A stretch of DNA of 64,000 nt, taken from NCBI GenBank assembly GCA_004431415.1, contig QPMI01000415.1, positions 241,823 through 305,822 of the forward strand, in the 5' to 3' direction. The notes under the pieces are model-generated. The model made no database searches. It was given only the letters and a program-made list of their open reading frames with translations, and was not told where the DNA came from. Positions 30,816 to 64,000 of the stretch are shown here, piece by piece. Made by a program: the position numbers and the translations under genes. Numbering within the stretch: position 1 is the first letter of the stretch; each line of letters begins with the position of its first letter. Origin of the DNA: Cyanophora paradoxa CCMP329 (taxonomy: Eukaryota > Plantae > Glaucophyta).

Positions 30816-31942
30816 CCGCTCCTCCCGGCGCCGCACCCCCCCCCCCCCCCCCCCCCCCCCTGCCCCGGCTAGTTTACAAGGCGCGCCTGACGCTCTCTAC
30901 AAGGGGGGCTGACGGGCGGGAGCGGGGGGCGCGCGCAGGGGGGAGGGGGTTGCGCGGGCCGTTAGGGGGGGCGTGCTATGGGGCATGGAGGGGGGCGTCC
31001 CTGGGGGGGGGGGGGGGGGGGGGGGGGGCTTGGGGCGGGTCCAGCTAATGTGGCAGCTAATTGGCGCATGGACTCTGGAGTCTGGACCCGGCCCGGCGGC
31101 GGCCCCCCGCCGGCGCCGGGCCCCCGGGCCCGGGAGCCTCTGCAGCCTGCAGCCTGCAGGCTGCAGGCTGCAGCTGCCAGGCTGCTGAGGCTGATGGCAG
31201 CCTGATGCGCTGAAGCCTGACTCAGTGAAGGCCTATTGACTTCATTCATAATGGAAAAACCATGGCTGGTTCTTTCATGAAGCTTCGTTTTCTTCATTGT
31301 TTTTGTCGCTTTCGAGCACGTGCCGGACGAACTCGCAGCGACAATCGACAACGAAGTTTTTATCCGCATTGAAAACTGAATAGCCTCGTGAATGGCATTC
31401 CATTAGATATCGAACACAGGAGTCACCAACGAACGTCACTGTGTGAAAAACCAACGGGGCGGGGGGACCCGGCCAGGGTACACCGTACACTGCTGCTTGA
31501 TTTGCATGCGCAGCCAGCCACGGCCCACGGTCACCGAAGCAGCACGCTCTGCCAGGCTGCCAGCAGCCGCAGCAGCAGCGCAGCAGCAATTGCAAGTTTT
31601 TAAATTTGCAACGCACGCGGAGGAGCGCCGCGCCTCGGTCCCAGACGGACGCCAGCGCAGCGCCGGCCGGCCCGCGGTCGGCCGGTTCATCGGCGCTCGC
31701 TCGCCGTAGCGGCGTCGCCGTCTGCGAGGATCCCGGACTTCCCGACAACCAGACATCCGAGCAGATCTAGACGACAGGGGTAGCTCGTGGAACAGACGCC
31801 GAGCGCGCCGGTCGCGGGGTCTGAGCACGCCCAAAGTTGCCCTTGGCGGCCCGTAAGCGCGCCCCGCATGATCAGCACGTCCTTTTGCTTCCGAAGCGCG
31901 TGATCAAATCAGGAGACGGCCTCGCGCTCGCACTCGGCGGCG

Positions 31943-34900
31943 ATGGGCGTAGAGCATCAGGAGTCCGGAGGGGCCGCTCCGGCGCCGCCGCCGGCCGCCG
32001 GCCTCAAGGTCGAAGACCCCGTGGCCGGAGTCCACACCCTGGCCGAGCCGTATCTGGATCGGCCTCGCAGCGGCGAGCGGCGCGCGAGTGCCCGCGGCCG
32101 CAGCGCCGGCTTTCTCGAGCCTGACACCGCGGCGGACCGGCGGGGGTCCGAAGGGACGGCGGGCGCCAGGCGGCCCGTGTCTGCCGGCGTCGCCGCCAGC
32201 GCCGGCGCCCGCGTGAGCCCGGCGCCGTCGGCGCCGCTGAAGCCGGCCGCGGCCGCGTGGGCGGCCACCGAGGGCCCGGTCGCGGTGGCCGGGCGGGGCC
32301 TGGAGTCCCTGGCCGCGGTGGCCATGACCGATCTCCCCCTCGAACAGCCCACGCCGGGCGTCGCGGCCCCCGCGGCGGCATCGGATCCAGAGCTCGCCAC
32401 GCCCCGGCCCTCCTCGCCCGCCGCGGCCGGCTCGCGCTTGCCGCCCGCGAGTGTTGGCGCCGGCGCCGGCGCCGGAGCGGACGCCGCGGCTGCGGCCCGC
32501 CGGCAGAGCTCGCGCCGCCTGAGCCGCCGCCTGCGGCCGCCCTCCTCGTGGGGCGCGGGGCTCCGCACCCTCCTCCGGGGCTTCCCCCCGGCCCACGAGG
32601 CCGAGTTCCGGCGGCAGCAGTCGGACGCCCTCTTCCCCATCGCCCGGTCCGCCTGAAGCTCGCTGCCCGCCCCGCCCGCCCGCTCGCCCGCCCGCCCACT
32701 TCGTTCGCAGGAACTCCTTCATCGGCGCCCTCCTCCTCCCCCTCCTCGTCCTCGGTGCGAACGAAGCCTCCCCCCCCCCCGGCGCCCGCGGCTGGTTATT
32801 TTCGGCGCAGGGACGCTGCTGGCGTCCGGCGTCTTCGAGCCTCTCTTCGGCCTCCGCCCCTTGGAGAACCCCGCCCTCTACCGCTCGGTCCGCCCGCGCC
32901 CGCACCCCCCTCCTCCCCTCCATCCCTGTACCCCCTCACGTCTTCCCCCCCCCCCAGGCGATCGCGGTGGGGGCGCTGACGTCCCTCGTCGTCCTCGCGA
33001 CGTTCCTCGCGCCGCCCTCGTACCCCCCCCGCCGCCACTGGCAGGCGCGCCCCCGCCGCTCGAGCGGGCCCCAGGCCTAGACTCACCGTACCCCCGTTCT
33101 TACCCGCGGCAACGCGAACAGAGCACGGTGACCGTCGGGATTGCCGTCACGTACGCGTGCCTCTACGTCTACGCAAAGGCAAGCGAGCGAACGCAGGCCG
33201 CCCGGGGCCGGGCCGGGCGGGACGGCGCCCCCTAGCTAGCCCTAGCCCTAACCCTAGGCCCTCGACTTGGAGCCCCATCGGGTCCCCGGTGCCCGACTAG
33301 AGTCTTATCTACCGGTACTGTCGCCGCCTCTGACCTCTAACCGACCAATCCAACCAAGCCAAACCAACTCCAACCCCCCCCCCCCCCTCTCTCTAACTCT
33401 GCTGCGCGCAGAGCCTGCGGATCGCCTCGTGGTACAGGGCGAGCTACAACTTCGGGGCCCTCTTCTCCTCGGCGCTGCTGGGCCTCCGCTGGGGCCAGAT
33501 CCTCACCGCCAACGCCGCCGGCCTCGCATTTGCCTTCGCCGCCGCCGCCTCGGTCCGCGCCCCCCCGCCCGCCCCCCCCCCGCCCGCCCCCCCGCCCGCG
33601 TCTAGAAGCTTGAGGGGCCACCCCCGCCTTTCCTTCGCCCCCGCCCGGCCGCCGCTGCCTCCGCCTAGAGGGATGGAGGGACGGCTGGAGGGGACCCCCC
33701 CCCCCCCCCCCACCACCCTGTCTTCCCTGCTCACGTTTTCGGCGCAGGAGACGGAGGACCCCCTCTCGACCTTCCAGGCGGCGATCGGGCTCCCCGTGTG
33801 AGTCACGGGAGCGAATCCGAGCTTCTTTCGTTCGCACCCGCGCGCGCCCCGCTCACCGCGCCGCTTCGTTCGCAGCTGCGCGATCGCGTTCGTGACGTGC
33901 GTCATCAACGTCTCCGTCAACGAGCTCGCCGCCCGCCGCGTGCGTACCCCCCCCCCCGCGCCCGCCCCGCCCGCCCTGCGCTCGCCATCTGCCTGCGTTC
34001 CTTCCGGGAAAGCTGAGTCTCCGCTTAACGCCCGCGGCCGAGGCTAGAAGCCTTCTCCTCCTCTGTGAGGAGCCGGCCAGCCCGGCTCACGGGGCCAGCG
34101 CAGGCCTTCCTCAAGTCCCTGGACCTCTCCCAGGAGGTCGCCGGCGTGCGTACCCCCCCCACCCCCCCACCCCCCCCACCCCTCTTCGTGTCCGACCCTC
34201 CGCTCGCAGTTCCAGGCGGAGAACTCGCAGCTGATGGAGGAGGTCAGGGCCTTCCACCGCCACTGGCGCGCCCCGCCCCCGCCCCGCCCCCGCCCGCCCC
34301 GCCCCGCCCCCGCCCCGCCCCCGCCCCGCCCCGCCCCGCCCCGCCCCGCCCTCCCAATGGCATCCATCTTTAACCTTAGCCTACTCTATGTCGCCCCGCC
34401 CTCGCCCCGTCCCGCCCCGCCCCCGCCCCTGCTCCTGCTCTGCTCGAGCGCGCTCTGACTGCGTCGGCCCGGCAGCAACTCGCTGGAGTTCGGGAACTCG
34501 CTGGGCGCCGCCTTCGGACTCCTCTCCGACCTCCTCGAGCGCCTCACAACGGGTCCGCCCGCCCGCCGCGCTCCTAGACGCCCCCGCCCCCCCCCCCTCC
34601 CTCCCCCCCCCCTCCCCCCACCCCCCCACCCCCCGCCTGAGCTTCTTCGCTGCGGGTCCGCAGAGCAGCGGGTGCAGGAGGCCTTCACGCTCTCCGCGGC
34701 GCTCCGGCACCTCCTCCGCCGCATGCAGGCCCGCACGGTGCGCGCCCCCGCCCGCGAGGAGCCTCGAGCGCCGCCGCCGCGCCTTCCAGCTCCGCTCTAG
34801 ACCTCCGCTCTCAGGCCCAGCCGCCGCCCCCTGGACCTCTTCCTCCCGCCCCGCCCCGCCCCCCCGCTCGCTCGCCCCCGCCCCTCAACGCCCCCCGCGC

Positions 34901-37900
34901 TCGCCCCCCCCCGCACGCAGAGCGTGGGGGCGGAGGAGCTGGAGGCCCTCGAGTCCGGGGACGACGAGAGCGCGAAAAAGTTCCACGCCTGGCTCGTCTC
35001 CCTCGTGCGCCCCGCAGTAGACTGCCGCTCACCTGAGAACCCGTCGCTCTGCGCTCTGAGCCCGCCTCGCTCGGCAGACGGGCGCGGCGGGCTCCCTTGC
35101 GGAGCGCGCCGCCTCGACCCCGCCCAAGTCCACCTCGCTGCGCCCGCCGGCCATCGACCCGTTCTTCTTGGGCGGAGGAGGGGGTGGAGGGGGAGGAGGG
35201 GGCGGGTACCGCCCCCGCCCCAGCGTCAGCGTGACGTCGGCGTCGTCCCAGTCCGGGGTACGTCCTTTCGGACTCGTTCGTCTTCGCCTTCTTGCTGAAG
35301 CGCGCGAGTCAGATGGCGAGCCCGCTGGTACCCGTCGAGGGCGGCTCGGATCGGGAGCGCGAACAGGCGGCGGCCGACCGGGCCCGCGCCTTCCTACCCC
35401 CCGGGTGGGCGCCGCCCCTTGCCCCTCCCCGCTCGCGCGCTCGCTCGCTCGGGCGCTGAGAGGGCGGGCCGGCGGGCGTGCAGGGCGGCCGGACGCTCCC
35501 GCTCGGGATCCTTCAGCTACTCCTGGGTACCCGGCTTCGTCGACGTACCCCCCAGTGACGAGGCGCGCCTTTTCAACCTCTACCCCCCCCCCCCTCTGAA
35601 GACATTCCGCAGAACTCGGCTGCGGTGACGAAGGCGCTGCGGGCCGCCGCGAGCCCCGATTGGTGCGCCTTCGACATCACAGAGGTACTGTAGCCCCCTT
35701 CCTTCCCCCTGGTGTACCCCTCGCCGATCCCCGTACCCCCCGCCGCCGCAGCTGGAGCGCCTGACGAGCGGCCGCGTCCTGCAAGTCCTGAGGTCCCCCC
35801 CCCCCCCCCCCCCCAATCCGGCCCCTTCAGCTGAGGCTGAGCCTCGGCGAAGCTAAGCTAATCTATGAGCTATGTCCCTAAGCTAAGCTATGAGCTATAT
35901 CCAAGCCGCCCCGCCTCGCGCTCTCGCTGATCGACCGATGGACCGCAGCTACGCGCTGATATCGGAGTCCGGGTCGGCGGAGTGGGTGACCTGCGACGGG
36001 TCCCGCCTCGCGAGCTTCCTCGCCGCCGTCGAGGGCGGATACCACGCCGTCGTGCGCCTAGTCCTCGGGGCCTGGGCCGCAGCCTCCGCTGGGCTCGGAC
36101 TCACCGTGCCCGCCGCCCGCCCCGACGCCCGCCGCGCGCAGCCGTACCACAACAGCACGCACGCGGCCGACGTGACGCAGGTCCGGGCAGCTCCCTAACT
36201 AATTATAACAAAGCTACTTTCCGAGCTCTTCGGAGTCCCAATACTCCATTTTCGAGCGAGCGCTCCCAGCTTAAGCCGACCGACCGACCGAGCGAGCGCG
36301 CGCGCTGACGGCACGGCAGGCGATGTTCCACCTGCTGAGATCTTAGATCCGAGATCTTAAATCTTAATAGGATCTTAGATCTTTATAAGATCTTAGATCC
36401 AATATCTTACAGCTCTTAGATCTAGCTTCTTCTTAGATCTAGCTCCTTCTCCTGAGCTCTCCGGCAGGCGATGTTCCACCTGCTGCGGCACGGCGGGCTG
36501 GACCGCTGCGTGCCCCGCCGCGACGTCTTCGCCGCCCTCGTCGCCGCCGCCGTGCGCCCCGCGCCCCGCGCCCCCAGAAGCTCGAAGAAGAGGACCAGAC
36601 CGTCTTCGATTCGCTTAGCTTAGCTGTAGACAAGGCTCGAGCCCGAGCGCGAGCGAGCGAGCGAGCCCAGGCGCCGTCTCACGCCCGGGGCGGGGGCGCA
36701 GGTGCACGACCTCGGGCACACAGGGCGCAACAACGGCTTCGAGATCGCGACGCAGTCGGAGCTCGCCCTCCTCTACAACGACCAGTCGTGCGCCCCGCCC
36801 CGACCCGCCCCGCCCCGCCCCGCAGCGCCTTAAGATCCCAAGGACGGCCGTGCGCCCCGAGAGATAAGCACCTAAGCCACCGTGAGCCACGCCTAAGCCA
36901 CCTCGAGCTGTCCCTCCTCTACAACGACCAGTCGTGTGCGCGAGGAGCCGGGCGCAGCTCTAGCTTCTCCCGCGGAACTAGATCTAAGCCGAGCAACAAG
37001 CTCCAAGCTATGCGCTGTGGGCTAAGCCCCTCGTCCGATCCGAAGCACTAGACGGTTTCCCCGATTTCCTAGCATCTCCCAGGATTCTAACTCCAAGCTG
37101 GAAGCTAAGCTAGTCCAAGTTCTAATCCAAGCTTCGCCCCTCGCCAACGCTAACTAACCGCCCGCCGGCCCCGCCCCGCCCCGGGCCGCCCGCGCAGGGT
37201 GCTGGAGAACCACTCGCTGACGCAGGCCTTCGCGCTCCTGCGCGACCCCGCCCTCAACTTCCTCGAGGGCGCCCCGTGCGCTACCCCCCTCCCCCTTCCC
37301 CCCCCCGCCCCTTCCCCCCCCCCTCGTCAGGCTTTAGATCCTGCCTCTCCAAGCTTCAGAGGCTCTAGATCTAGACCGGATTCAAGGCTCCAGATTTTAT
37401 AGCCTTTTCGGGGCTTTCAAGATCAAGATTTGTGCGGCGGCGCCTGACGCGGGGCCCGCGGCTCGGCAGGCGGGAGGAGCGGGCGGAGTTCAGGCGAACG
37501 GTCGTCTCCCTCGTCCTCGCCACCGACATGGCCGTGCGCGGCGCCACCCGCCCCACCCGCCCTCCCCGATTGATCCCCCGCCCCTCCCCGCAGAAGCACT
37601 TCGAGGTCCTGTCGGCGTGGAAGGCGCACCTCCTCTCCCAGGTCCGACCCCCTCCCTTACTGTTTAGTTAGCTAGCTATAGCTAGCTAGCTAGACTCTTT
37701 AAGTTAGTTCTAGTGTGGTTGGGTCCGATCCGCTTCACCATTTGTAAATGGGTGGCCGCCCCGTCGGTCTGATTCGTGCGCTCTTTCGTTCGCAGGCGCT
37801 GGGCGGGGTGGACGCGGAGCAGGCGCGGAGCCCGACGGCGGCGGCGGGGCGCCGCGCCGGGCCCGTGGCCGGGGCCGCCCCCTCGGGCGCCCCCGCACAG

Positions 37901-42615: not shown

Positions 42616-43249
42616 TTTTTGTTTTTTTGCAAAAGTGGACGTCGACGTCGCAACGGTCGCATTGATACACCACGGCACATGTACCAAATTACTACCAATT
42701 GCAATGTTCTACGTGACGTGCCCTTCCGAGTCACTTCCGACCAGTCGACTATCTACTATCTAGCCGAAGATGCTGGCTAGTTGCCGGCCATGGTCGCTCA
42801 ATATGGGAGGTTCGCCTGAGTGGGGGAGCCATGGTTTTCGGTGATAGCCGTATATACGTAGCCAGACCCGCGCGCCCACCCCTTGATCAACTCCTCCATC
42901 CCTCATGAGCCCTGGAAGTGAAATGTCCCGCAGTCCGGTCCGCCGCCCTCCCTTGCCGTCGCGATCGCTCCACCCTCCCTCCTCATCCCCGCCCCTCCTC
43001 CTCCCTCCTCCTCACCTGCGCCCCAGGACACCGATTAGTCGGTGTCCCGTCTTGTCAAGGTGAAGAAGGTGCTAGGAGGAGGAGAGGAGGAAGGAGAGGG
43101 AGTAGGCAGAGGCGGCAGCAGCCCTCAGGCTCCCAGCTCTCTGCTCCACCTGCATCTGCCCGCGCTCCCTCCACTCTGTCATCCCTGCGCCTCTTACCGC
43201 CCCGCCCCGCATCCGCTGCCCACCTTCGGGCCCCTGCTGCCGCCTCTGA
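42616..43249 (-). mobile_element. 5'-truncated, 5'-inverted copy of the LINE at 51024-64000
   Basis: 42616-43121 aligns to 51024-51456 (poly(T) plus 3' end). 43129-43249 is the reverse complement of about 51443-51557. Confidence 0.9.
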
Positions 43250-46463: not shown

Positions 46464-49400
46464 CTAGGCCTGAACATGTACACAGCCCGAGCCGCCTACG
46501 AGCCGCTGGTCGCCTCCGCATCTGCATCGACGTCGACGCGGTTTAGGAGGCGCCTCTGCCGCCCGCGGACCCCGCCCGGGAGCAGCGCGGTCCGCGCGCG
46601 GCGCTCCGTTTCGAGGATCCAGCCGCGGACCTGCCGCGCGCCACCGGATCGAAACGGGCGCATGCGCGCGCTCGCGCATGCGCACGAGGGCGACGGCCCT
46701 TAGGCCCGCGAAGGCGCGAGCTGCGCCCCGAACGACCAGATTCGCTGCAGCTTTGCCGTACAGTTTGCGTGCCGCCCCGGCGGTCGCAGTGGGGACGAGG
46801 ACGAGCGCGAGGGCGGTGAAGAGCGTGCCAGGGTCCCCCTCCCCCCGCATGACCGGCCGCCAGCGGGAGTGGGCGGCGTCGCCCAAAAGGAGCCGCCCGG
46901 CGCGCGAAGCCAGCAGTGCCTGCGCATGCATATGCCACGCCGATCGGGAGTCAAGCCAAGAGGACGGTCGAGCACGATATCGATCGCGAAGCGCTCAAGC
47001 TACAGGCGGACCAAGAACAGAGCTCCTGCCGCCCAGCAATCGATGAAGAACCAGAGAGAATCGTAGCACAGAATGCACTGCAGCAGAGTTGGTGAGAAGC
47101 CTGGCGATAAGCCTAAGATATACGGTCCATTTTGGCAATCAGTCTTATTAGTATGCTTCATTAGTACCTGCTTCGCCTCGGGATCAGGCTCCTTGATGGT
47201 GACGGCGCCACTCCCAAAGAACAGAAACGACCCGAGAATCGCTGGCATTTCGACGATAAAAACGTACATTAAGATGTACTGCAGCAATAAACGCTGGAAT
47301 TGAAGCGATTCGCGAATACATATGCGAGGCGGGTCGTGGTCAGCGTTTTGCGAAATTTAAAGCAACCTCATATGCATTTAATTATAAGCGAAATCACGGA
47401 TATTCGATATTTATAAAAAATCTAAATCGATATTGTGCGCGGATCAGGAGAGCTCACGAAAGCTTGCGTGATTCGATTCGGCTCAAAGAAAGCAGTTTCG
47501 CCCTGCGCCCTGCTTTAATACATACGATAGATATATACGATTTCTCACGCGCGCGAGCACATTCGCCGACTGGTACGCGTGACGCAGGAACGGGAATATA
47601 AAAAGCGTGATACAATGGCACAAGAGCGCGAGCAGCGTGACGGCCAGCAGGTCGCAGCTGGGGGCGGCTACATCCGTTGCAGGGGCCGGAGTGTGCAGAC
47701 GCATGCGGAATTGCACGAGAAGACTCGGGATCCGGGTGAGCGCCACTGGCCGTATATTTCACGCTCGATTACACCGATATCATATTTAACAGAGGAACGC
47801 ACCGGGAGCGGAAAGTAGAACAATGAACGTGCAGAATGCACTGAAGAGAGCCGCCACGGAAAGAAGGAAGCCGGCGGCCTTCGCGAGCCACCGGTACCGG
47901 GGATCGATGTCTGGCGCCCAGAGCCATCCAAGGGGCGGAGATTCGGACTTCGCCAGCACTCTGCACGCGCTCAAAGATATCAGGAGGTCGGACTGACGTC
48001 GGACGTCGGGATTTATATTATCCATGCCGAGAGAAGCGGCGTCGACGTCGGATATTATATTATCCGTGCCGAGAGAAGCGGAGGCTCAAGGGCAGGACCG
48101 GAAGGGCCAGCAGGAGGCCTTGATGACGACGGCGAACGCAGGAAGCTTAAGCCCCAGGAACGGGCCGCGCTCCAACAGACAGAAGCAGATCCCGGCCAGC
48201 CCGCCCTGCAACCGTTGAAGTCGAAGGCGAGAGGTTCGTATTTGTACTAAGTATACAGGATTCTTATTTATTCGAACCGTTCTCTTGAAGGTCGTGACGT
48301 GGCACGGGAGCCATGGGAGGGACGCGCGGCAGAGGAGGCTGGCGATCAGCGCCTGCACGCGCAAGCGCATGGAATGAAGAACAACCAGCTAATTATATAA
48401 ACTACGACGCAGGTTCAATCCGAATTGAGGAGCGCACGGTTACGGTTGTGACGAAGCACCCCAAAATACGCAAGAAGAGGAGACGATAGAAAGCCCGCGG
48501 CGGCGCCTGCGCAAGCGCTCACACGACATCGATATATATATCGCGCGGGAAAATTCGACGCATGCGTAGAGTTTGAGCTTCGAATAAGCTTAAGCGAACC
48601 TCTTCGAGAGTGAAATTCCCCAGGGGACCGGGCTTGGCCGCAGGGAGGGTCCAGGCGTACATAGACCCGGCAGGGAGGTCCGGGACATTGCTGCCGTCGC
48701 CTCCCTCCCTGGACGCCTGCACACGAGAGGCGCAGGCATCGCCGACCGCGCGCTCGAACTCCTCGACCGCCCAACTGCGAGCTCGCAATTGAGCCGTTAA
48801 CGTTGAAGCGCCAAGCTTAAGGTCTGGCATCGACACAGCGGCGCGGCGCACGCGATCACGAAGACAGCCATCAGGTTCTCGCCCAACATGGATACGAAAT
48901 CCGCGAGCTGGAAGAACGAAGCTTCCGCGGGATGGGAACCGTTGTGGCGAGCGTGATGGCGAGTATTCGGTGCGCTCCGGGGCATGAACGGATGCGTCTT
49001 GACCAATCGAAATCGCGATTGCGCATGCGAGCCGCCGGCGCCGTTTCCGACCAGGAGGTGGAAGAGAACGAGTCCCGTCGTGAGGCGAGCCGCAAGAATA
49101 GCCAGGAGGGCGACGGCGCGTCTGCATAAACTTGCATAAGCCAAGCTCGCAACCGATCATGATCTTGGCTTCGAATTCAGGATCGTACCTCGAGCGTGTC
49201 CAAACAATCGCAGCGGAAGCAAAGGCGGCAAGCTTATGTGTCTGCCGGAATTGATTGATAAGTTATTATAAGATAGCGCAAGACTGGAATCAAATTACTG
49301 CATTGAAATTAGCGATTCGGCTGCCGAGATCGCGGTAGAGCGCCCTCCAAAGTCCCCAGGGCGGAAGCGGTGGAAGCGGATCCGGAACCTCCGAAAACCG

Positions 49401-49805
49401 AATCTGATCACCGAGCCATGACGGTATTTCGCGCAGGATTAGCGGGGAAATTCGAAGAATATAAGAGCTATGCACGCGCGCGCCGCTGCTGACGGCTGAC
49501 CTGAGCACTGCAGATTTCGCATTTCTTCGAATTCCAGTCGCTTTCCGACCTCTGCAGCCAAGTTTCGCAGCACTCCTGCGGGCGCCGACGTGAATCGCGG
49601 GCGCCGGCGCCGTCGCGCGCCGGCGCCACGCCCTTCTGTTGCGCACCTCGTGGACGAAGGACAAGCTGCCGACGCAATTACATGGCTGGAAGAGCTCCCG
49701 TTCGTCGTCCTCGATGGGCCCGCCACGGCAGATGCGGCAGACGCGTTCGTCCGCATCTGTGTGCAGATCCTCGCGATCGCTCCCCGCGCGGCGCCGGCGA
49801 TGCAT
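46464..49805 (-). CDS. RING-CH (RINGv) E3 ubiquitin ligase with many TM segments, MARCH6/Doa10-like
   Basis: CRICRGG...LFQPCNCVGSLSFVHE|ECCETWLQRS...KCEIC gives a C4HC3 RING, followed by many hydrophobic exons down to about 46.5 kb. The 3' boundary is approximate. A 14-aa coding tandem duplication lies at about 48002-48081. Confidence 0.8.
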
Positions 49806-50582
49806 GCAGCTGCTCTGTGTGCGACTAAAGAAGCTGTTGTCACCGTACACCACCGCACCGGCGCGGGGAAGAGCTTTGAGTTCGAGAGAGGGTCTCGCGA
49901 TCCGATGATCGATCCCTATAGATCTCGCGATCGCTTTGTCTGAAACAAATATCCCCTCTAGATCTCTTGTATAATTCCCTCCCCCCCCTCTATAGATCTC
50001 CTGAAACTCCCTTCCCCCAGTATATAATAGTGTTCGATTCGAGACGCGAAGCCGCTTTGTCTTCAGCCTGGCCTGTTTGTGTCTCTACGGCCGGGAAGAC
50101 CGCGGCAATATTAATAACGCGTTTCTAAAATTAAACCCAGATATAGAATGACTGCAACTGCAAGCTTAAGGTATACGTAGGGCGCCGGCCTCAGCCGGGG
50201 TCGATCAGCTGCGCGTCGGCAAATCGCCCGCGCAGGCTATTTTTAATAAGACAGCTGCTCCACGGCGGGTGAAATCTGCGCCACGGCACATGCCTTTCAA
50301 TTCGCCCGCCAAGAGGTTTAATTTGCGCCGCGAAAAAATATCTAGATCGACACCGCTGCGATTTTCGCAAGTCAAAGCCGCCGGTTCATGATCCGACCAT
50401 CAATATCGGATCGATATATCAGCATCAGCCGCATGAGCACCGTGGCACCTGATCGATCATGAATTCGAATATATCTGCTGCATTCGCAGCAGCAGCGACG
50501 CATAATCGAGCAGCTGTATCATAGTATGCCATGATGCGCATGTGCAGGTGCCGCCGGGCCGCATGCGCAGTGCTCGCTTAAA

Positions 50583-51023
50583 TTGATATACACAACCGGC
50601 TATATATGCACAGGTACGGGTGTTGCAATCATTGATCATTGAATTGACTCGCGATCAGTGATCGCGAAATTGCGAATAATTCTCGCCGGGAGAGATAGGC
50701 TGTACAGGTGCAGGGGAGACCAAAGGAAGATCTAGAAGGGCCTAACCAAAACTAGCTTTACGAACCACACAAAATTCAGACGGTTTTTACTAGCTACCAT
50801 CACATCACGAACGAACTAGTACTCGTCGAACGCGTGGTTGCATTGATATGCACACAACCAGCTATGCACAAGTACGGGTTTTGCAATTGAATCGCGATCA
50901 TTGATCATCGGATGCGCGAAACGAAGCGAGGGTAAAATTGCGAGTAGGCTGTACAGGTACAGGGGAGAACTAGACCAAAAGAAGATCTAGAAGAGCCTAA
51001 CCAAGACACACAAAAATTGCGGA
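50583..51023. repeat. Diverged tandem duplication of about 200 bp (50583-50790 and 50843-51023); the LINE tail abuts the end of the second unit
   Basis: Both units share ttgatat..cacaacc.gctat..gcaca.gtacggg..ttgcaat, taggctgtacaggt.caggggaga, gaagatctagaag.gcctaaccaa and cacacaaaa. Confidence 0.8.
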
Positions 51024-51606
51024 TTTTTTTTTTTGCAAAAGTGGACGTCGCATTGATACACCACGGCACATGTATCAATGTTCTACGTGACGTGCCCTTC
51101 CGACCGGTCATCTATCTAGCCGAGGGTGCTAGCTACGTGCCGGCCATGGGTCGCTCAATATGGGAGGTTCGCCTGAGTGGGGGAGCCATGGTTTTCGGTG
51201 ATAGCCGTAACCAGACCCACGCGCCCACCCCTTGATCAACTCCTCCATCCCTCATGAGCCCTGGAAGTGAAATGTCTCGCAGTCCGCCGCCCTCCCTTGC
51301 CGCCGCTCCGCCACGCCTCCTCCTCCCCACTCCGCCTCCTTCCTCCTCCTCACCTGCGCCCCAGGACCCCGATTAATCGGTGTCCCGTTTTGTCGAGGTG
51401 AAGAAGGTGGTAGGAGGAAGATATGAGGAAGGAGAGGGAGTGGGCGGAGGCAGCAGCTTGGGGCGGGCAGCGGATGCGGGGCAAGGCAGGGAGAGGTGCC
51501 GGGACGGCAGAGTGGAGAGAGCGTGGGCACTGACAGGCGACGCAGAGAGCTGGGAGTGCGGAGACGAGGCGGGCCGCGAGGGGTCGGGAGGGGTCGACCG
51601 GGTTAG

Positions 51607-51758
51607 AGGGGGGGGCCGAGGCCAGGGGGGTGGCCGAAGCCATGGGGTTGGCCGAAGCCAGGGGGGTGGCCGAAGCCGATGGGGTGGCCGAAGCCAAAGG
51701 GGGGGCCGAGGCCATTGGGGGGGCCGAAGCCATAGGGGTGGCCGGAGCCAGCGGGGGG
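51607..51758. repeat. 18-bp minisatellite near the LINE 3' end, encoding P(L/M)ASA(T/P) repeats
   Basis: About 8 units of ggggtggccgaagcca-type sequence. Confidence 0.85.
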
Positions 51759-52699
51759 TCTGACACTTGAGGGCCGGTTGGGGTCGGGGGGGAGACCGTA
51801 GGGGGCCGAGGGGCAGCGTCTTGCGAGGTCCCGAGCGGGGGGGTCAGCTGAAGCGAGGGGGGGGAGGGGGAGTTGGCTGCTTGCAGCGTCGTAAGTGGTT
51901 TGTACACTCCGGGTGCAAAGAGGGACGTGATTGTGGGTTGCCCCGTGGGTATCGGCATCGTTCGCGCTTTTTTGGTCATGCGCCTGGGAGTCTTGCGGCC
52001 GGTTGCCTTTCTTTTCGCCGTGGGTACGGGCGGGGCGGGTGTAGAGGCGGGAGGGGGAGGGGTCGCGGGGCGCGGGCATTTGGGTGCCGGGGCGGAGGGG
52101 GTATCGGCTGTCCGTTTACGTGAGGCAGGCGACGGGCGTGTTCGTTTTGGGGAGGGGCCAGGGGGGGCCCCGGAGCGGGGCGTTTGGAAGGTTGGGTAGT
52201 GTTCGTAGGACCCGCGGGCGAAGCGGGCAGGATGCCAGTGTCGGAGTTCTCGTGTGACTGTCGTGCTGGGGGTACCGCAGGTGAGGAGGTAGGGCAGGAG
52301 GTGATCTCAGGGCGGGCGGGGCATTTTCCCCGTCTGGCGTCGGAGTGGGCCTGGAGGGCAGATGCAGAGGCGAACCGAGTGCCGCAGGTGCAGGAGAAGT
52401 CAGACGTCCCGGCGGCGGGTCCTGCATCGGGCAGCTGGGGGGAGGGGGGGCCTGGGGGGAGGGGGCGACGGGGAGTCGTGCAATTGCTTGGCGGAAGTTT
52501 TCCAAGAGAATCCATGGTTGGCCTTCCGAGCCCAATTCGCAGCAGAAGTCGGTGATGGAGATGGTATCATGGAGGGAGGGGGCGGGGGGAGGGCGGGGGG
52601 GAGGGGGGGGACTGGGCGGCTGCACTAGAGGCGAGCGGGAGGGTTTGGAGTCTGCATGTTTGCGGTACCGACGTTTGGTTCTGTCATTGATGCCGTGTC

Positions 52700-53810
52700 G
52701 GAGCTCCCAGGCGTGGTTGCGGGCGCAGCGGTCTCTCCAGATCGCACGGAGGTGTTGGTCGAGGAGCAGCGCTAGGTCTTTTTGGATTGACGATGAGGTG
52801 GTCTTGTTGATGCCCAGAGCTGTGCAGAGGGCAGGCAGTCCTGCCGGGGTACCGAGGCGCAGGAGAGCGAGGGCGGGGAAGGGAAGCATGTCGGCCAGGG
52901 CCGGGCTGAGTTTTTCCCATAGTGTATCGGCGAGGCCGGGGGGGCGGAAGAGAGCCGGATTTGCGGTGGGGAGAGAAGGGCGGAATGGAGGGGAGAGGCG
53001 GGGTCAGGAGAAACGAGGCGGAGGAAGGGGAAGAGTTGAAAGATGGTATCGTCGTGTCCTAGTGGTTTGGGCGAGTGGCGGAGAACCCGGGTACGGAGGA
53101 AGGTCACGAGTGCGTCCTGGAAAGCTTGGAGAAGGAGGCGAGCGGCGGGGCAAGTAAATATGTGGACGAAGTCTTCGGGGGGGTGGGTTGTGGGGTCGGG
53201 CGGTCTGGGGTCTGCGGCCACCGGTGGGGAAAAGGGCGAGGGGAGCCCGGGGGGTGCATGTGGCAGGGGCGGGGAGGGGGGGGGTGGGGAAGCAGCATCT
53301 TCGGGATGGGGCAGGGGTGGGAGGGAGGTGACAGAAGGGGCAGTGGGCGGTGCCGTCGGGGAAGAGAGGGCCGTAGAGGTCGGGGTCGTGGAGGAGGCGG
53401 ATGGTGAGGGAGGGAAGGCTTCCAAGCATGCATTGGAATCTGACTTTGCGGAGGTGGTCGCCTGTGGGGGTGCGGCAGTCCGGTGGCTTGTCGGACACTA
53501 GGGAGAGGGCTGGAGCGAGGGTAACATGGGGGTTGCTGAGGATGGCCCCCGCGTTGCGAAGTTGGCGCCAGTCAAGGTATTGGGAGAGGGAGGCTTCGGC
53601 TAGGAAGTGAGGGCGGGGGTCCCCCTCGACGCGGTACGCATGGAGTCTGCCTCGGTAGGGCTCGGCCCCGGGGACTGGGCCGTGGGATAGTGGGGGCGGG
53701 AGGCCAACACGGATGAGGAAGCATTTGAAACTGTGGGGAATGAAAAGAAGGGCGGAGAGGGGGGCGTCGGGGGCTGTTTTAGCAAGCTTGTCAACGGCGT
53801 CATTGTGGCG
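52700..53810 (-). other. RNase H C-terminal helix, then CCHC zinc finger and LINE C-terminal domain
   Basis: HNDAVDKLAK (53807-53778) is in one open frame with VEGDPR...RKVRFQCMLGSLPS...CPFC. After frameshifts come EDFVHIFTCP and AIWRDRCARNHAWE. Confidence 0.8.
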
Positions 53811-54309
53811 GTTGTCAGGGGTGTAGGCTGGGTTCGGGATACGATTCTTAGCCGGGGTGCGGGCCGCCTCCTTCTGTGCGGCTGTTTTGGATGTTTTGGC
53901 GGACCGTGGTTGCGGCAGGGTGGCTTCACGGTGAGCGGCTTCAGTTAGGATGGACGCCGCTTCGAGTGGGGTAACGTGGGACGGCCGGAAGAGACGGCGC
54001 GCTGTGGCGGAGGCTTCGTTGCGAGCCAGGTCGGCGAGCTGAGAGGCGAGTTCTTGGGCGTAGCGGGCGCCGGGAGGGAGGGGGTGGCGGGCCCTTCGGG
54101 GCGGGGCGGGGGAGACTCAAGCACAGTTGGGGAGCGCGGGAGGGCTGGATGGTTGGGAGAGGATGGTGGGGAGTCGAGGGTAGGGAGGGTGCCGCCGGTG
54201 GAGACTGGGGGCGGCGCGGCGGATGGGTACGCCCGGGGAAGGTCGGCGGGGCCGGAGGGCCGGGAGGGTTGGGCTGCAGCATAGGGGGTCAAGGGTGACG
54301 GACCCGTAG

Positions 54310-54995
54310 CAGAGGCTGAGGGCAATATATTCACGGTATCTGCGGAGCGCTGCAGCGTCGGCCTGAATGTAGGCTGGGGGGCGGGGCAGGTCCGACGGGG
54401 TAAGTGCTGAGGAGCGACTGAGTAGGTCAGCTGTGAGGAGGAGGAGTGGACCGCAGGCCGTGCTGTTTGGGGGCTGGAGAACGGAGAGGGATGTCTCCGG
54501 GCGTAGATAGGTCCATCTGCAGAAGGGAGTGGGGGGGAGGGGAGATCCAGAGTCGCGCTGACTCCAAGTGGCCGCCAAGTCTTGTGCAAAGGAGACAAGG
54601 TGATCAGGGACGTCGAGGGAGCCATTGTAGAAGTAGAATGAGCGCGTCTGTGGAAATAGAGCAAGTAGGTGCCAGTGTCCCGGAGGTCTGCTGGAGGAAG
54701 GGGTCAGCGAGGGGGCTGGTGGGGTCTGTTGAATTGGGCAATAGGTGAGGATGGGGACGAGAACAAGGCGGGCATCGAGGAGTCGTCCGTGGGGGATGTA
54801 TCGGTGTAGGGGGAGGAGGGCAGAACCCCGAGAGTCGAAGTGGGAGGCTGCGCTAGCAGGGTAGGAGCTGGACGATAGGAAGTGAGCAGGGTGGGGCGAG
54901 GCCAGGGCGGCTTCACGGGAAGAGAGCAGGTCAAAAAAGGCTTCCACGAGGGGGAGGCTGAGGGGGGCATTCGGACGGAGGTGTATAAGGTCGCC
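54310..54995 (-). other. Ulp1/C48-like protease domain 2, intact-looking His-Asn-Cys triad
   Basis: DLIHLRP..LVEAFFDLL..HFLSSS..LVLVPI..GHWHLLAL (His 54677-54675)..YFYNGSL..LQPPNSTACG (Cys 54455-54453)PLLL..YREYIALSL. Confidence 0.82.
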
Positions 54996-55509
54996 TCGTC
55001 GAATGAGTGAGTAACAGTGAGGGTCGGCTCGGGGGGCGGGTGGGAGGGGGGGCTTCGACGCGAGGGTTGCTCCGCGCAATAATCATTGTCTGCGAAGCGG
55101 AAGGCATTCCCCAGCCAGCTTTCCTCCGCCAGCGTCAGCGGGCGAGGGAGGGGAATTCAGTCGGGTGGACGGGGGTTCGGCCTGGGGAGGCATGCGCAGC
55201 TGGGTGGGCCGCGGGCGCCGGAGGGCGTGGGATTGAGGAGTGGGCGTGGGAGGGGGTGGAGGGATGTGGGAGGGGGGAGGGGAGTTGGGGGACCGGGGGG
55301 GTGTAAGGGGCGAGGGGGAAGGGGGGGGACGGAAGGGAGGGGGGGTGGGGTCTCGTTTGCGTCGGACCCGGCGGCGGGCTTTTGCTGCCGTGTGCTGGGA
55401 GGGGCGGGAGCTGGTGCGTGGGGTCGTGCGCTGCCGTTTTGTTGTGAAAGCCGGGCCGTTGGCCTGGATTGTCCCCAGGAGGACCTCAGGGTCCCGGAGG
55501 AGGAGAGCG

Positions 55510-56140
55510 GCCGCCCAGCGTTCCCGGTAGATGGGGGCGTGGAAGGGAATGGGGCGGCCCCGTCCTTTGCCGTACAGGTGGACTTCCTCGCCGCGGCCAA
55601 TGAACTCAGCGGCGGTCATGACGAAGAGAGCGTCTTCACCCGTGTGGACGTGTTTCCAAGCTTGCGTGGGGAAGGTGCTGGTGTCGTATTTCCAGGCCGA
55701 GCGCGGGGAGGGGTCGCCGGGGCGGAGGGTCGCCGTCCACCATTTGAGGACCCAGTCTTTAAGAAGGACCGTGACGTCGGAGGCGGGTTTGCGGGTGACG
55801 TCCAGGATGCGGATTTCGCGGAGGCGGGCTGAGATGATTGCTAGTCGCCAGGGTCGGGACCCAGAGGGTGGTAGGGGAAGGAGAATATAGTCGTACTCCG
55901 TTGGGGAGAAGGGGTGCGGGACGTAGGATCGGTCCGTTAGCGGCCGGCCTGCGCGGGTCTTGAGCGAGAGGGTGGAGGGGGCTGTGCCCATGAGGATTGA
56001 GGTTGCGTGGGAGGACGAAAGAAAGAGGCACTTGGGGGTGGTGGGGGCGTGCAGCCGGAAGGAGACTTGCCGGTTCTGAAGAAGTCTGAAGAAAGCGTCA
56101 ATGGGTTCTGCAGGTATGGGTTGTTCGAGGAGAAGGGTGT
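55510..56140 (-). other. Ulp1/C48-like protease domain 1, catalytically degenerate
   Basis: PIDAFFRLLQNR...CLFLSSS...DYILLPL..GSRPWRLAII...IRILDVT...FPTQ...TGEDALFVMTAAEFI...YRERWAAAL. His is replaced by Pro and Cys by Asp. Confidence 0.7.
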
Positions 56141-57363
56141 GGCCAGGTGGGCCCCAGACCGGGGTTGGGGTCGATGAGGGAGAGAGGAGCCGCTCTAAGG
56201 GCGGCCAGGCGAGATTTTATGCCATCAAGGAGGGGAAGTACTCGGCGGTCATACCGGGGGCCGTCAGGATCGATGGCAGCCGAGTAGGGAATGGCTCGGC
56301 GGCCATATCGTTCGAACAGTATGGGGAGGGCGCCGGTTTGGTCGCGGAGTGGGAAAGTGGGTGGGGTGCCGGGCGGGGCGGGGGTGGGGTGGCAGTGCGG
56401 GCAGGATAGGGCAGGTCCCCGTGCCCATTGTTCTGCGATCAGGGAGGAAATGGGGAGTCCCCACATGCCAGGATCACAGCGGTGGTACGCGATCAGAGGG
56501 GCACCAGCCTCAGCTTGGGAGGTGGGGGCAAGCGTGAGATCTTCGTCCCAATACCAGGCGGGGAGAGGCGTGTCGCGGTCGGCGGGGACAGCCGGTTTGC
56601 AGAGGGAAGTTTGATAGAAAGTCCAGCTGGGGCCGGGGGCCCGAGGATGGGCTAAGTGGTGGTCGAGGGCGAGCTTCCTTGTAGGCCCGGGGTCGGGGTA
56701 TTCGGCGTCGGGGGGGTCCTCGGGGAGTGGGTGAAGGAAGATTGGGTTGGGAGGGGAGTACCATTGGAAGGAGATGTTGCGAGTGATGTTTTTGCGTCCG
56801 AAGGCTTCTAGGAAGGCTGAGTAGGCGCGGAGGATGTCGCAGTCCGAAGTGATGGTGAGATGTGCGTCGGAGGGGAGGAGAGCGTGGTTTTTGGGGATGC
56901 GGATGCAGCGGTTCCAGATGAGAGTTTCCTCCGCTGCGAATGCCCGTTCGAGTCTAGCCGACGCGAGGGGGACGAGGTCTAGGATCAGGTGGGTGTTGGT
57001 AGTATCAGAGGCGTCGACATATTCGGCTAGGTCCGCCTGGCAGCGGAGGAAGTTGTAGTCGGCCGGGCTATCTGCTAGAATATATGTGCGAAGATGCCGG
57101 CGAGGCGGAAAGAGGGACGAGAATAGCGACGGGGGGAGGGGCGAGGAGGAGTCGTCCGAAAAAAGGAGTCGGGCGTCGGGGATGTCCATTCCACCAATAT
57201 AATGATAAGGGGCCGAGGCAGGGAACGTCTGCGGGGCAGTAGGTGGGGGGGCAGCTGGTCCGCTGAGGGGGACGCGGGGTCGGCGGGGGGAGGAGGGGAC
57301 CGGGCGTCGGGTCGCCTGTGGGGTTGTAGCCGTTGCGGTTGGCCGCGGAATGGTCTTTGGTTG

Positions 57364-57780
57364 GTGAGAGGGGACCCATTGGAGCGTGATTTGGAAGTTT
57401 GGGTCTTGAGCGATACGAATGGCGTATTGCGTGCGAGCGTTGAGGAGAAGGGCCCCGTCTTCTCGGCGGAGCAGGGTGCGGAAATTGATAGGGTGGGAGA
57501 AAGAGGAGGGGTCTCGGAAGGCGAAGGCTGTCAGGGCCCGGATAGTGTTTTGGCTGTCCGTGATAATTTTCCCACCCGTGGGCCCGAAGTACGTGAATGC
57601 TGCGGAGATCGCGCCTGCTAGCTCTCCCAGGTTCACGTTGTGTTGGACACCGGGGAGGCGGTGGGCGAACTCGATGTGGTTAGGTAGGTCGGGATTATTT
57701 TCGAGGGGTGCAAGGCCGGCGTAGGTGGTTCGGACTGATGCGGAGCCCTGTTTTTGTGTGCTGGCGTCCGTGTATATTAC
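57364..57780 (-). other. RNase H, N-terminal part
   Basis: VIYTDAS (Asp 57768-57766), NLGELAG (Glu), IITDSQ (Asp), ITLQWVPSH (His 57366-57364). Confidence 0.9.
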
Positions 57781-59299
57781 CCGGGGAGTAGGGTCGGGGG
57801 GAGGAGGTGGGGAGTTTAGGGCACGGAGCGTGGGGCAGAGCTCAGCGAAGAGGGCTCGGGAGGTGGCGAAGAGGAAGTCGAGCCCGGCCGAGGAATCATA
57901 GAATTCGCGGTCGGCTTGTGAGGGAGGGGTCCTCGGGCGTGGGCGTCGCTCGAGGGCGACATTGGTGGCCTGGGCTTCCGCGCGGAAGGAGTCCCACCAG
58001 TCAGTTTCCCGGAGCCAGAGGTCGATGAAACCAATATGTGTGATTTCGCGGGGAGTTGGGAGGGGGAGTTCGGGGTCATATTGGGCGGAGGGGGTTTCTG
58101 AGGAGGGTCGAGGCGGGCTTTTTTAGCTGCTCTTGTGGGTTGAGCGCGGGTGGGCTGTTGTCCTCTGAAGCGGGAGCATGGGAAGGCGGGGCGGAGTCGG
58201 GCAGCTGCCGGAGCGGGTGGGAGCCGGCCTATTTAGGTTGGAGAGGCTCGGAGACCAGCCCTTCGATTCGCACGAGGAGCCCGCTGGAATTCGGCGAACG
58301 TGGGATGCGTACTCGACCCAGCGGCAGGCCGTTGTGGAGAGGCCCAGCTCGCGATGGAGCTGTTCGGAGCCGCAATATTTTGGGTGGGGGCAGAATTGGA
58401 ATTCGAGTCTGCGTTCACGCCAGGCAGGGTCGAGTTCAAGAGCTGATAGGCCGGGGTCGCGTGTGGAAAGTCCATCGTATGGGGTGAGGCAGTAATGGAC
58501 GAGTTCCACCCCATAATTATACTCTGAGTCTCGGGGGCAGTTAGGGTCCGCGTCGGGGTCCTCGGGAGCCAGTTCGTCCGGGTTTTCGTCCGGGAGAGGG
58601 GGTTTCCCGACGACGCGACCAACTAGGCCTTGGGACGTCCAGACAAAGTCACCAATTTTGAGTCCCGCAAGGACGGCGTCGGCTTGGAGAGAGCGACGGA
58701 TGTCTGGGATAGAGGGCGGCGGGGGCATGGGGTATCGGGGGAGGAAGGGGGACTGGATGGAAGGGCGGGGAAGAGAGAGTTCTTCGCGGACCGCGTCCCA
58801 CCAGGAGGGGGCACGTTTGTAGTATGCCGGACACGACATGACTCCAGAGGAGGGACCAATCAGCTAGTGAGCCGTCGGAGGACGTAATGTCACGGATGGT
58901 GAGGAGGCCGCAGCGATAGAGGCGCTGGCCGGCTCGTTGGAGGGTGAGGGGCGTCAACTGTGATGATATAATGTATTCTCGGCGAAGGTGGGACCGTCGG
59001 GAGGGGAGGCCGTGCGTCCAGGAATCGCATGTTGTGAGGATGTGGTGGGAGGTGGAAGTCAGGTCTGCCGTGATGGCGAGCGTAATATTTTTCTGTAGTG
59101 TAAGGGGCCCCGAAGGAAGGTTCGGATATTCATGTGGGAGGAGAGGGAGCCCGTACCGGGCCTGGGTGTCGAGGACGCGTTGTCGGTATATTTGGCCGTA
59201 GAGTGATGATGTGTGGGAGGCGAGTTCCTGGCGGAGGCGCTCGTCGACGCACTGCTGTTGGCGTTGGATGACTGCTATTGAGGGAAGGCGATAGATGGA

Positions 59300-60500
59300 G
59301 GAGAATGCAGCCGTGGAGACGGACTGGGCCAGGTTGGCAGTATGTTTGCCGCGGTGAGCCAAACAGCGTCGAGGGACTGGCATTGGGATGGCGTTAGGGT
59401 CATGATGCGGAGGGGGTATGACAGTTTAGGGAAGAGAACCCGGTGTAATATCACTTGGAATTCGTGAACGGTAATCTTTTTCGTGGCTAGGATCGAGATT
59501 GCGGATTGGAGCTGGGATTTGAGTAGGCGGACTTGGTGGGTCCAGGACAGGTTCGCAGTAAACTGGACGCCGAGGACGCGGAAGGGCGTTGTGGGGGAGA
59601 GGATGTGGCCAACCTCAGCTCTGGATCCCGGAATCGCCAACTCCGACATAGTATTTGCTCTTGACCGGCTCTTCGGATCGGGGGGGTTTCCAGTGAAAAA
59701 TTTCCGTCTTTTTGGCGTTCAAGTTCATGCCATGGACATGTAGAAATTCGGACAGCCAGTCAAGCATATGTTGGAGGCCCTGAGCCGAGCTGGCAAGCAT
59801 GGTGGTGTCGTCGGCGTATGCAAGCACAGAGACTTTGGGGCAGGGACCGGCGGGGAAGTAGAGGGGTTCGCCAGGGCATGGTGGGCGGGGGAACGGGGGC
59901 GGGTCGGATCAGATCGGTGCGGCCCAAGCTGGTAGCCGAAATTGGACTGAGTCGCTCGTTCTTCAATGGCGGTGAGAGCGGCGTCGAAGAAAATGCGCCA
60001 GTGGAGGGGGGCTTCGATGCCACCTTGGGGGAGGCCACAGGGGACTTGAAAATAATCAGTGCGGCCGTGGGGGGTAAGGATGCACGCCGTGCGGTGTTGA
60101 GCTGCTTTTTTGTGGAGGGCTATATATCGTTTCCCTTCAGGATGGAGGTGGAGTTGGATACGGTTAAGGCTGAGCTCTTGGCTATGCCAGGAGACACTGT
60201 CGTAGGCGCTGGCGATATCCCCAGGCCGCCAAAGATTGGCTTTTTGAACTGTGTGCGCGTCCTCGAGGGAGGATCGGAGGGCGTAGAGGACAGGGTCGGT
60301 AGATTCGCGGCGACAGAAACATAATTACGGCCGCGTAGAATGTTATGTGTATCAATGCGGTCTTCCATGCGGTGGGTCAGGAGGCCCGTGACCAGCTTCC
60401 AGGTGACTTCTTGAAGGGTGATGGGGCGGAGATCGGCGAGATCTGCTGAATTATCTCGTTTCGGGATAGCGTAGACTTGGCCGCGAAGTGCGTGGTCGGG
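59300..60500 (-). other. LINE reverse transcriptase domain
   Basis: VYAIPKR, LRPITLQEVTWKL, GDIASAYDSVSW, GLPQGGIEAPLHWRIFFD, LAYADD (YADD at 59818-59807), GMNLNAKKT, FRVLGVQF. Confidence 0.95.
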
Positions 60501-61789: not shown

Positions 61790-62655
61790 CGCCAGTACTG
61801 GGAAGTGATCGGCTGAGAGCAGGGGGGAGGGTCGTCCAGGGACAGCCAGTGTACGAGTGCCCAGCGAGCGGGCCGCTAGGGTGGGGGAGGCGAGGGCATA
61901 GTCGAGGCGGGCGGCGTTCAGGAGAGGGCGGTGGCCGTGCTCGTCGATGAAGTCTGCGTGGTGTGAGATGTGCGTGAAATCGCCGGGGGTACCGGTGTCG
62001 ATGAGGCCCCAGGTCGCTCGGAGGAGGGTCCAGATTTCCGCGTAGGAGTTCGGGGGTGTAGTTTCGGTGCGCCGGTTGCCCCCGGTGATCCGGTCGTTGC
62101 ACGGAGAGTGTGTGCTATTCATATCGCCGAGTACCAGGAGATGTGTCTGCCAGTCAGGCTCGTGGAGGTCAGGTGCGACCTTCGCGGTCAGGTATTCGGT
62201 GAGGTCGTGGAGCTCTTTTTGCAAATTGTCGTGCCCGCAGTCCGGTATAGAGTGAGAGGACAATGAGGCGCTCGCGCGTGCGCGGGAAGTCAAACCGAGC
62301 GCCGGCTACCCGGCCGTCAAACGCGTAATCCGCCTGGCGGTGCGCTGCATAGCTTGCTGAGATCCACAGCGCGGAGCCGGCGGTGCCAGGACGGGCCGCG
62401 GAGGGAGGGGAGTAGACAAGGTAGCTAGATTTATGGCGGCGGACTGCCGTCTTAATCAGGTGATCGCGGATATTGGGCGGAAAGGGCTTCGAGGGGGGGC
62501 GGTCAACGGGGACCATGTCGACCTCTTGAAGAGCAACGAAGTGACAGTCCCAATCACGGCGGCCATAGTCGATTGCGCTGATAAATTTAGTTGCAATATT
62601 GTTGCCGCTCGTCTTCCCCTCCAAGCGGCGAATATTCCACGTGAGGGCGCGGAGG
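61790..62655 (-). other. LINE apurinic-like endonuclease (APE) domain
   Basis: LTWNIRRL, VALQEV, GSALWIS, DGRV, LIVLSLY, VLGDMNS, LIDT, FTH, RLDYALAS, ADHFPV. One frameshift near 62248. Confidence 0.93.
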
Positions 62656-64000
62656 TTCAGCTTCGCATTAGCCGCGTCCGGGGGATGTGCTAGGACGGGG
62701 ATCTGGAGCACATCACGATGGCGGCGAGCGTCAATACGGTCAGCGGTGTAGAGGGAGGGAGGGTATAGCGTTAGAAGGGACGAGGCCGCCGTGACTAGTG
62801 TCGGGGAGGAGAGGGCAGCGGCGGCGGTAGCGACTGCAGCGGCCGTAGCTGTGCTGGGCTCAATGTCCGCAAGAGCGACGGGGACAAGGGCGGCGAGGAG
62901 AGCACAAAGGAGGAGGCGCGCGGGGAGAGGGGCCGGGCGGCTGAAGGTCCGTTGGACTTGTGGGGCGCGGCGCGCAGGCCGGCCCAGGAGTTCGAGACCG
63001 GCGTCATGCGGCGCAGCGTCCGTGGCGCCGGCGTCAGCGGGGCCAGCGCTGGCGTGCACGTAGGCACTGGCGCGGAAGCTAACTGCGAGGTACGCGGCCG
63101 TGCGCGTGGCTGGTACGCGTCCGGGTCCGTACAGCGGGGCTCGTACGACAGCTCTCGGCGTCATGCAGCGCGGCGTCCGCGGCCGAGCTCGAGGCGCCGG
63201 CGTTGGCGGGCTAGCACTAGCGTGGGCGCCGGAGCTAGCTGCGAAACCTGCAGTGGTAGTATCGGTGCTATAGCTAGGCGCCGGCACGCGACCGTACGCA
63301 GGGTTGGTGGTACTAGCTATAGTGCAGCTATTAAAGCGCCAATCGCGGATTGCGGAGGTATTGGGCCGCTTCGAATCATTGCCCGACTCACCGGTCGCAT
63401 GAATAGAAAAAACTGTTCGCGTTGGAGTTTTTTGACGGCACGCGGCGGGGGTACCGGTAGGCGCAGTTTCGTCCGGGGCCCTGAGACGTTCCGAACGGAA
63501 GGGGAGGCTCCACCGGCCACTGCAGTAGGCGGCGGCGCTGATGTGGCTTCCGTGCTCCAGTCCAGCGATCATGTTCTGGAGCATGCCGTAGCGCGGTCTA
63601 GCGAACGTGGTCCAGGAGGTGCTCCAGATGTAGACACGGCGACTGAGCTGCGAAAGTACTTGCGCGGCCTGCTGGATGCCGAGGCGAACAGCGCGGCGTG
63701 GAGCGGCAGCGACAGTAGCATCAGTACGGGGATTGGCCTCTCGCTGCGGGCCTGGAGACGCGCTCGCGCGGCGTTGCAGGGACCTCCGGGACACTTCTGC
63801 ACATCGAGGTTTGTTCTAGGGTCGGACAGTCGGCTCGGGAGGCGACAGCGTTCTGGGGGGGCCGACAGCGTCTGCAGGTCGAACGGAGGCGAGACAGGCG
63901 GCGCGATGGGCCCGGCGGCGGCTTCACTTCAGGTCCAGGTCCGTCAGCACGGGCGCGGCGCGGCAGCGGGGCGGCCGACAGCGTCTGCAGGTCGCGCGGC

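Follow-up and report, generated by a model that had tools for sequence, protein, structure and literature searches.

Related Elements and the Locus

Among the long interspersed nuclear elements (LINEs), the closest described systems are the RNase H-bearing, APE-type elements of the I group, plant L1, and Proto1 (PMC4640811). Here, a LINE with a similar set of parts is described from a 64,000-nucleotide stretch of the GC-rich glaucophyte alga Cyanophora paradoxa CCMP329 (contig QPMI01000415.1, positions 241,823 to 305,822 of the forward strand; hereafter the window, in whose numbering all positions are given). It is a retrotransposon of the type without long terminal repeats (non-LTR), reaches on the minus strand from 62660 or beyond to its poly(A) tail at 51034–51024, and encodes, in this order, an APE endonuclease, a reverse transcriptase (RT), an RNase H, a CCHC knuckle, and a C-terminal region. 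The likeness to the above elements extends to APE, RT, the D-E-D-H-D residues of RNase H, CCHC, and poly(A). The difference lies within the RNase H: in aligned LINE-type domains, chosen by a pattern that itself demands a 10-residue His–Asp spacing, the last Asp follows 10 residues after the His, whereas in the present LINE it follows after about 1,186, the interval being occupied by an insert that includes two domains resembling C48 proteases.

Dualen/RandI, another long LINE of algae, also combines APE and RNase H with a cysteine protease, but its protease is Josephin-like and N-terminal, and it has a second, restriction-like endonuclease. In the present LINE, no restriction-like endonuclease was detected in 53003–52119 by eye or with Pfam, no dedicated profile having been used. 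NeSL and Utopia-1_TSP are also non-LTR retrotransposons with an Ulp1-like cysteine protease in the open reading frame (ORF) (PMC4640811); their protease, however, is single and N-terminal and is accompanied by a restriction-like endonuclease, whereas the Cyanophora LINE has an APE and a dead/live pair of domains inside the RNase H. Membership in the NeSL/Utopia group was rejected because of the APE and the internal position of the protease domains.

Ulp1 cargo is also carried by Ginger1, Mutator, and KIU/Vandal, where a role in SUMO/ubiquitin pathways or in silencing has been proposed, the function being unproven there as well (PMC2836005, PMC13317346). These are DNA transposons, and their Ulp1 domain is C-terminal or encoded by a separate gene rather than nested in a catalytic fold. 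As for the place of insertion, strand 5 and the last catalytic helix of RNase H-fold enzymes can be adjacent or can be kept apart by an insertion whose size varies, as in the Hermes transposase (PMC3985635). The present LINE is parted at the same site, although by about 1,180 residues with protease folds and in an RNase HI proper, for which no insertion between strand 5 and the last helix has been reported in the searchable papers.

The RNase H Core and Its Displaced Last Helix

The RNase H core, which lacks the last helix, occupies 57364–57780 on the minus strand and has the catalytic residues Asp 57768, Glu 57624, Asp 57558, and His 57366–57364. It is recognized by PF00075 with 26.9 bits against a cut-off of 25.8, the match covering positions 5–123 of the 141 in the profile. 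The core aligns with LINE RNase H domains until the His, where a Pro/Thr-rich linker takes over, and its AlphaFold2 (AF2) model matches RNase H structures, a result that is partly circular because the model is driven by an RNase H alignment.

The missing helix was found at 53772–53807 (Asn 53804; Asp 53792–53790 as the fourth carboxylate). It is the best match in the 6 kb downstream to an ungapped position-specific profile built from the tails of 40 RNase HI proteins that had been selected as homologues of the E. coli enzyme, and its score was equalled in 0–2 of 1,000 composition-matched Markov simulations (p at most 0.002). HMMER alone scores the helix weakly (E 0.18), and the question was decided by the ungapped profile test; a profile of LINE tails was selected by a pattern similar to the one mentioned above and is hence biased, so the RNase HI profile was relied on instead. 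No helix-like match lies nearer to the His in the scanned 6 kb. The preliminary description of this locus, made from the sequence alone, had placed the end of the three carboxylates and the His loop at 57364 and the helix only at 53807, about 3.55 kb downstream; the PF00075 and tail-profile evidence bears out both statements, no nearer GNExAD-like motif following WVPSH and the next-best match scoring 5.9 bits against 18.9 for the helix.

All five catalytic-site residues D-E-D-H-D are thus present (57768, 57624, 57558, 57366, and 53792), but the last Asp does not lie about 10 residues after the His, a spacing of exactly 10 being found in 51 of 51 RNase HI proteins. The distance is 3,574 nt, or about 1,186 residues, and the insert therefore comprises about 1,180 residues. 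The displaced helix directly precedes the post-RNase H region with the CCHC knuckle (53150–53771, minus strand; CxxC near 53340, HxxxC near 53165), which is its expected place. This region, assigned by inspection, has no Pfam match, and comparison with post-RNase H regions of the I-group type gave no match beyond the helix itself. The RNase H of this LINE is split by the insert.

Within the knuckle (53150–53345, minus strand), CxxC and HxxxC are separated by a Pro-rich gap of about 50 residues, from which it follows that the LINE family tolerates insertions in other loops too.

The Insert as a Family Trait

The depth of contigs assembled from public sequencing runs is similar in order of magnitude over insert, core, and tail, and none of these contigs shows a joint that leaves out the insert; since the contigs are short, the depth demonstrates the presence of the insert rather than the absence of an empty form. 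Neither a target-site duplication (TSD) nor a terminal inverted repeat (TIR) was found at the bounds of the insert, and its G+C content at third codon positions (GC3) is 0.66–0.75 as compared with 0.68 for the core. The searches for relatives yielded one sister copy only, P0001, which is 88% identical in the first, unknown domain of the insert and 93% identical in the second, domain A. Searches of the contigs for P0001, of plasmids, and of the PDB by sequence gave no matches. Among the listed variants, 4 of 5 in the insert fall at third codon positions, too few to test; in the C-terminal ORF, 18 of 30 do (p 0.002). An origin as a nested element was rejected in view of the missing TSD and TIR, the even multi-copy depth, and the core-like codon usage; the insert is a family-wide, multi-copy trait, in agreement with the preliminary description, which had treated it as part of the LINE.

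A contig of run X20 matches 56973–57779 at about 90% and continues from 56973 into unrelated AT-rich sequence; it is evidently a truncated or rearranged copy located elsewhere.

The in-frame layout of the preliminary description did not hold literally: the window copy has eight breaks between the His and the Asp, of which five are repaired by contigs and three were placed by inference. At the five (56160, 56134, 54247, 54206, and 54079), the public-run contigs carry one extra G. These breaks look like assembly errors rather than decay because each extra G adjoins a G run and some of the contigs are otherwise identical to the window; the additional bases also bypass the stops at 56098 and 54117. 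The three inferred breaks lie near 55260–55040. The read-through translation used here, made from a single copy rather than a consensus and with X at each break, is stop-free in the chosen frames, and P0001 passes the first two break sites uninterrupted.

Domains of the Insert

The insert, encoded on the minus strand throughout, begins with Pro-rich linker 1 (57183–57363), which holds a Gly-Gly at 57195–57190. It is followed by the unknown domain of about 340 residues (56164–57182), for which no Pfam match was obtained. A His/Cys cluster in this domain (56484–56391, HxC ... CxHCH) is kept in P0001 and might possibly form a Zn site, perhaps of a degenerate RING-like kind. Next come domain A (55450–56140), Pro-rich linker 2 (55155–55449), which holds inferred frame breaks, and domain B (54290–55154). 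Linker 3 (53808–54289), whose frame is backed by the contig G insertions at 54247, 54206, and 54079, carries a second Gly-Gly at 54196–54191 and then about 90 low-proline residues that are probably helical.

Both domains, A and B, score 0.95 against Peptidase_C48 clusters by ESM Atlas features, with 190 shared in the case of domain B. In domain A, Pro 55853 stands in place of the His and Asp 55634 in place of the Cys, only Asp 55802 being kept, and P0001 has the same His and Cys losses; to judge by these residues, domain A is a conserved pseudo-protease. Domains A and B are mutually homologous (23% identity, E 7e-5), which points to a tandem duplication.

Domain B has His 54677, Asn 54626 (+17), Gln 54476, and Cys 54455. 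In an alignment with a genuine PF02902 domain (blastp E 0.002, shuffle p 0.014), its span between His and Cys stays in register, and the domain is regarded as a candidate CE-clan (Ulp1/C48-like) protease. The C48 assignment of both domains rests on the ESM Atlas features together with this weak in-register alignment. In papain-like proteases, Asn is common as the third triad residue (PMC10318531), and the arrangement around the Gln resembles that of adenain (C5), with His54, Glu71, Gln115, and Cys122: the spacings of 17 between the His and the third residue and of 7 between the Gln and the Cys are common to both proteins (PMC4246237). Adenain, which processes precursors, is a lead from spacing only; no sequence match was shown for it or for another CE-clan polyprotein protease that processes precursors, pS273R of African swine fever virus (C63; PMC10318531). 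It is plausible that domain B is active as a protease.

Used for reference was an 885-aa protein from the contig of a giant-virus metagenome-assembled genome (L335:8787-11441, minus strand), in which about 560 residues without annotation come after a canonical Ulp1 domain.

A Proposed Tethered Isopeptidase and Its Alternatives

The reading that we favour, at roughly even confidence, is that of an isopeptidase for ubiquitin-like proteins that is tethered and loops out at the usual insertion site of the RNase H fold. It starts from three observations: the split itself, its presence across the family, and the pairing of a dead domain with a potentially live one. The ORF2 protein (ORF2p) would be one long chain with APE, RT, RNase H, and CCHC, from which a module of about 1,180 residues (the unknown domain, the dead C48-like domain, and the candidate active C48-like domain) would loop out between the strand 5/His loop and the last helix. 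With the help of the flexible Pro-rich linkers, the last helix may dock back on the core and complete the DEDD site, as the last helix of DDE transposases does beyond their insertion domain. The last helix of HIV RNase H, which bears the fourth acid, is mobile, and the enzyme is inactive without it (PMC3488238). A helix docking back with the cargo looped out would be the simplest arrangement, and the surface-loop cassette suggested in the preliminary description accords with the site, at which insertions into the RNase H fold are known (PMC3985635). Domain B would be an isopeptidase that acts on SUMO or a different ubiquitin-like tag; brought to the ribonucleoprotein (RNP) and the integration site, it could free silencing or repair factors, or ORF2p itself, of their tags, while domain A, as its tandem duplicate, could serve as a non-catalytic binding module. 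The tethered isopeptidase is ranked first because Ginger1, Mutator, KIU/Vandal, and NeSL/Utopia repeatedly carry Ulp1 domains, for which roles in SUMO/ubiquitin pathways and in silencing are proposed but unproven.

Several results weigh against it. Neither domain matches Pfam Peptidase_C48 (PF02902), domain B giving nothing at E values up to 10, and a phmmer search with domain B of 1.8 billion representative proteins produced no match; of the two profiles relevant to the preliminary description, RNase_H was thus matched and Peptidase_C48 was not. When domain B was compared with the PF02902 domain by hhalign, the probability was only 21% (E 0.001), and its single-sequence AF2 model is unusable (pLDDT 32). 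In domain B, Asn replaces the triad Asp, and Pro is found at Cys-6, the usual position of the oxyanion Gln, with Gln at Cys-7, so that the domain departs from the strict C48 pattern of a His-Asp-Cys triad plus Gln at Cys-6; it may still work in the manner of a C48 protease. Of the two Ulp1-like proteases originally described, the C48-like features stood in both, but domain A lacks the His and the Cys, and domain B is atypical. With regard to the family-wide presence, no single contig spans the insert, the contigs being short, and no insert-less relative emerged from the metagenome-locus search or from the length-limited homolog searches with the post-insert region and the RNase H core.

The same domain B might instead act on its own chain, an option that the preliminary description named beside deSUMOylation of host factors, although we regard this as unlikely. 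It would cut after Gly-Gly at 57190 and 54191, releasing a cargo of about 995 residues and leaving a two-chain RNase H, with the core on the APE-RT piece and the last helix on the CCHC piece; cleavage would gate or free the RNase H, and the liberated cargo might go on to target host proteins. Cleavage after Gly-Gly is known from CE-clan proteases such as adenain and the SENPs. The insert has only two such sites. They lie in the outer linkers 1 and 3, the folded cargo being free of them, and this bracketing of the three domains (p 0.012 in shuffles, 0.004 with none inside) keeps self-excision alive, as do the spacings of 17 and 7 shared with adenain, which matures polyproteins and cuts a Met-Arg-Gly-Gly substrate (PMC4246237). 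However, the bracketing test is post hoc, the count of two agrees with the 1.6 expected from composition, a third Gly-Gly is located at 57576 in a loop of the RNase H core, the second site hangs on the contig-supported frame, and the Atlas neighbours of domain B are C48 rather than adenain. To our knowledge, LINEs are a class without known processing of their own ORF2p.

In a further reading, both C48-like domains are non-catalytic, and the insert would serve as a binding scaffold, for SUMO- or ubiquitin-tagged chromatin for example, by which the RNP is targeted or shielded. Domain A, dead yet 93% conserved, fits such a scaffold, as do the Asn and the Pro at Cys-6 in domain B; but the His and Cys of domain B are both kept in register, Asn often takes the third triad position in papain-like enzymes (PMC10318531), and the Gln at Cys-7 is the adenain arrangement, so we hold the scaffold to be rather improbable. 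Slightly more improbable is an RNase H inactivated by the insertion, with a host RNase H as a substitute and both halves persisting as structural relics. Many LINEs function without RNase H, and here an insert of 1,180 residues adjoins the His loop; against this, four carboxylates, the His, and the last-helix Asn are all kept, though the insert looks old by codon usage. That the split is an artefact (a nested element, a copy-specific capture, or a chance match to the helix) is very improbable and already largely refuted: the eight breaks in the assembly copy and the lack of one contig across the insert would suit it, but the simulations for the helix, the absence of TSD and TIR, the even multi-copy depth, and the sister copy P0001 speak against it.

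Other Features of the LINE and Its Surroundings

Upstream of the RNase H on the minus strand, the APE endonuclease domain is located at 61790–62660. It is broken by frameshifts in the assembly, because of which its PF03372 score (E 0.0023) falls under the gathering threshold, and its motifs are visible in the translation. The RT (59560–60500, minus strand, YADD near 59810) was identified by PF00078 on one piece (E 1.8e-5); its best matches are 25–28% identical. Between the RT and the RNase H lies a long region (58126–58863, minus strand) with a weak YajC match only, and also a short beta-rich, SH3/Tudor-looking stretch near 58660–58600. The C-terminal part of ORF2, in which the variants are mostly at third codon positions, occupies 52119–53003 on the minus strand. 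In the 3′ region of the LINE, an 18-bp tandem repeat is present in 8.4 copies (51607–51756).

The 3′ end is set by the poly(A) tail (51024–51034, minus strand), an end shared with a 0.5-kb 3′ fragment of the same LINE family at 42618–43224 (minus strand), which is about 80% identical to 51024–51556 and differs by several short insertions. The 5′ end is possibly outside the window. An 8-bp match between 63349–63356 and 51016–51023 (minus strand) could be the TSD of a 5′-truncated copy of 12.3 kb, or may be due to chance. A C-rich stretch at 25800–37500 was considered as a second LINE copy and rejected. About 1.2 kb past the 3′ end of the LINE, a host exon (49293–49853, minus strand) encodes a RING-variant (MARCH-type) E3 ligase domain.

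Significance

The ingredients of this arrangement, Ulp1 cargo in transposons and insertions at the RNase H site, are known, and it is their nesting that is new as far as searchable. No description of the split layout was found in the literature, subscription journals, Repbase, and Dfam being outside the search. Within these bounds, the LINE from C. paradoxa would be without precedent in two respects: its RNase HI carries a multi-domain insert between the His loop and the last helix, and, as an APE-type LINE, it has protease domains enclosed by a catalytic domain. It marks a natural site at which RNase H tolerates very large insertions. If self-processing did occur, unlikely as we consider it, the LINE would possess a protease-gated RNase H that receives its last catalytic helix from the C-terminal fragment. 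A dead domain and a potentially live one share a tether that offers two candidate cut sites, which makes for a tractable system and gives a handle on why transposons repeatedly capture Ulp1-type proteases.

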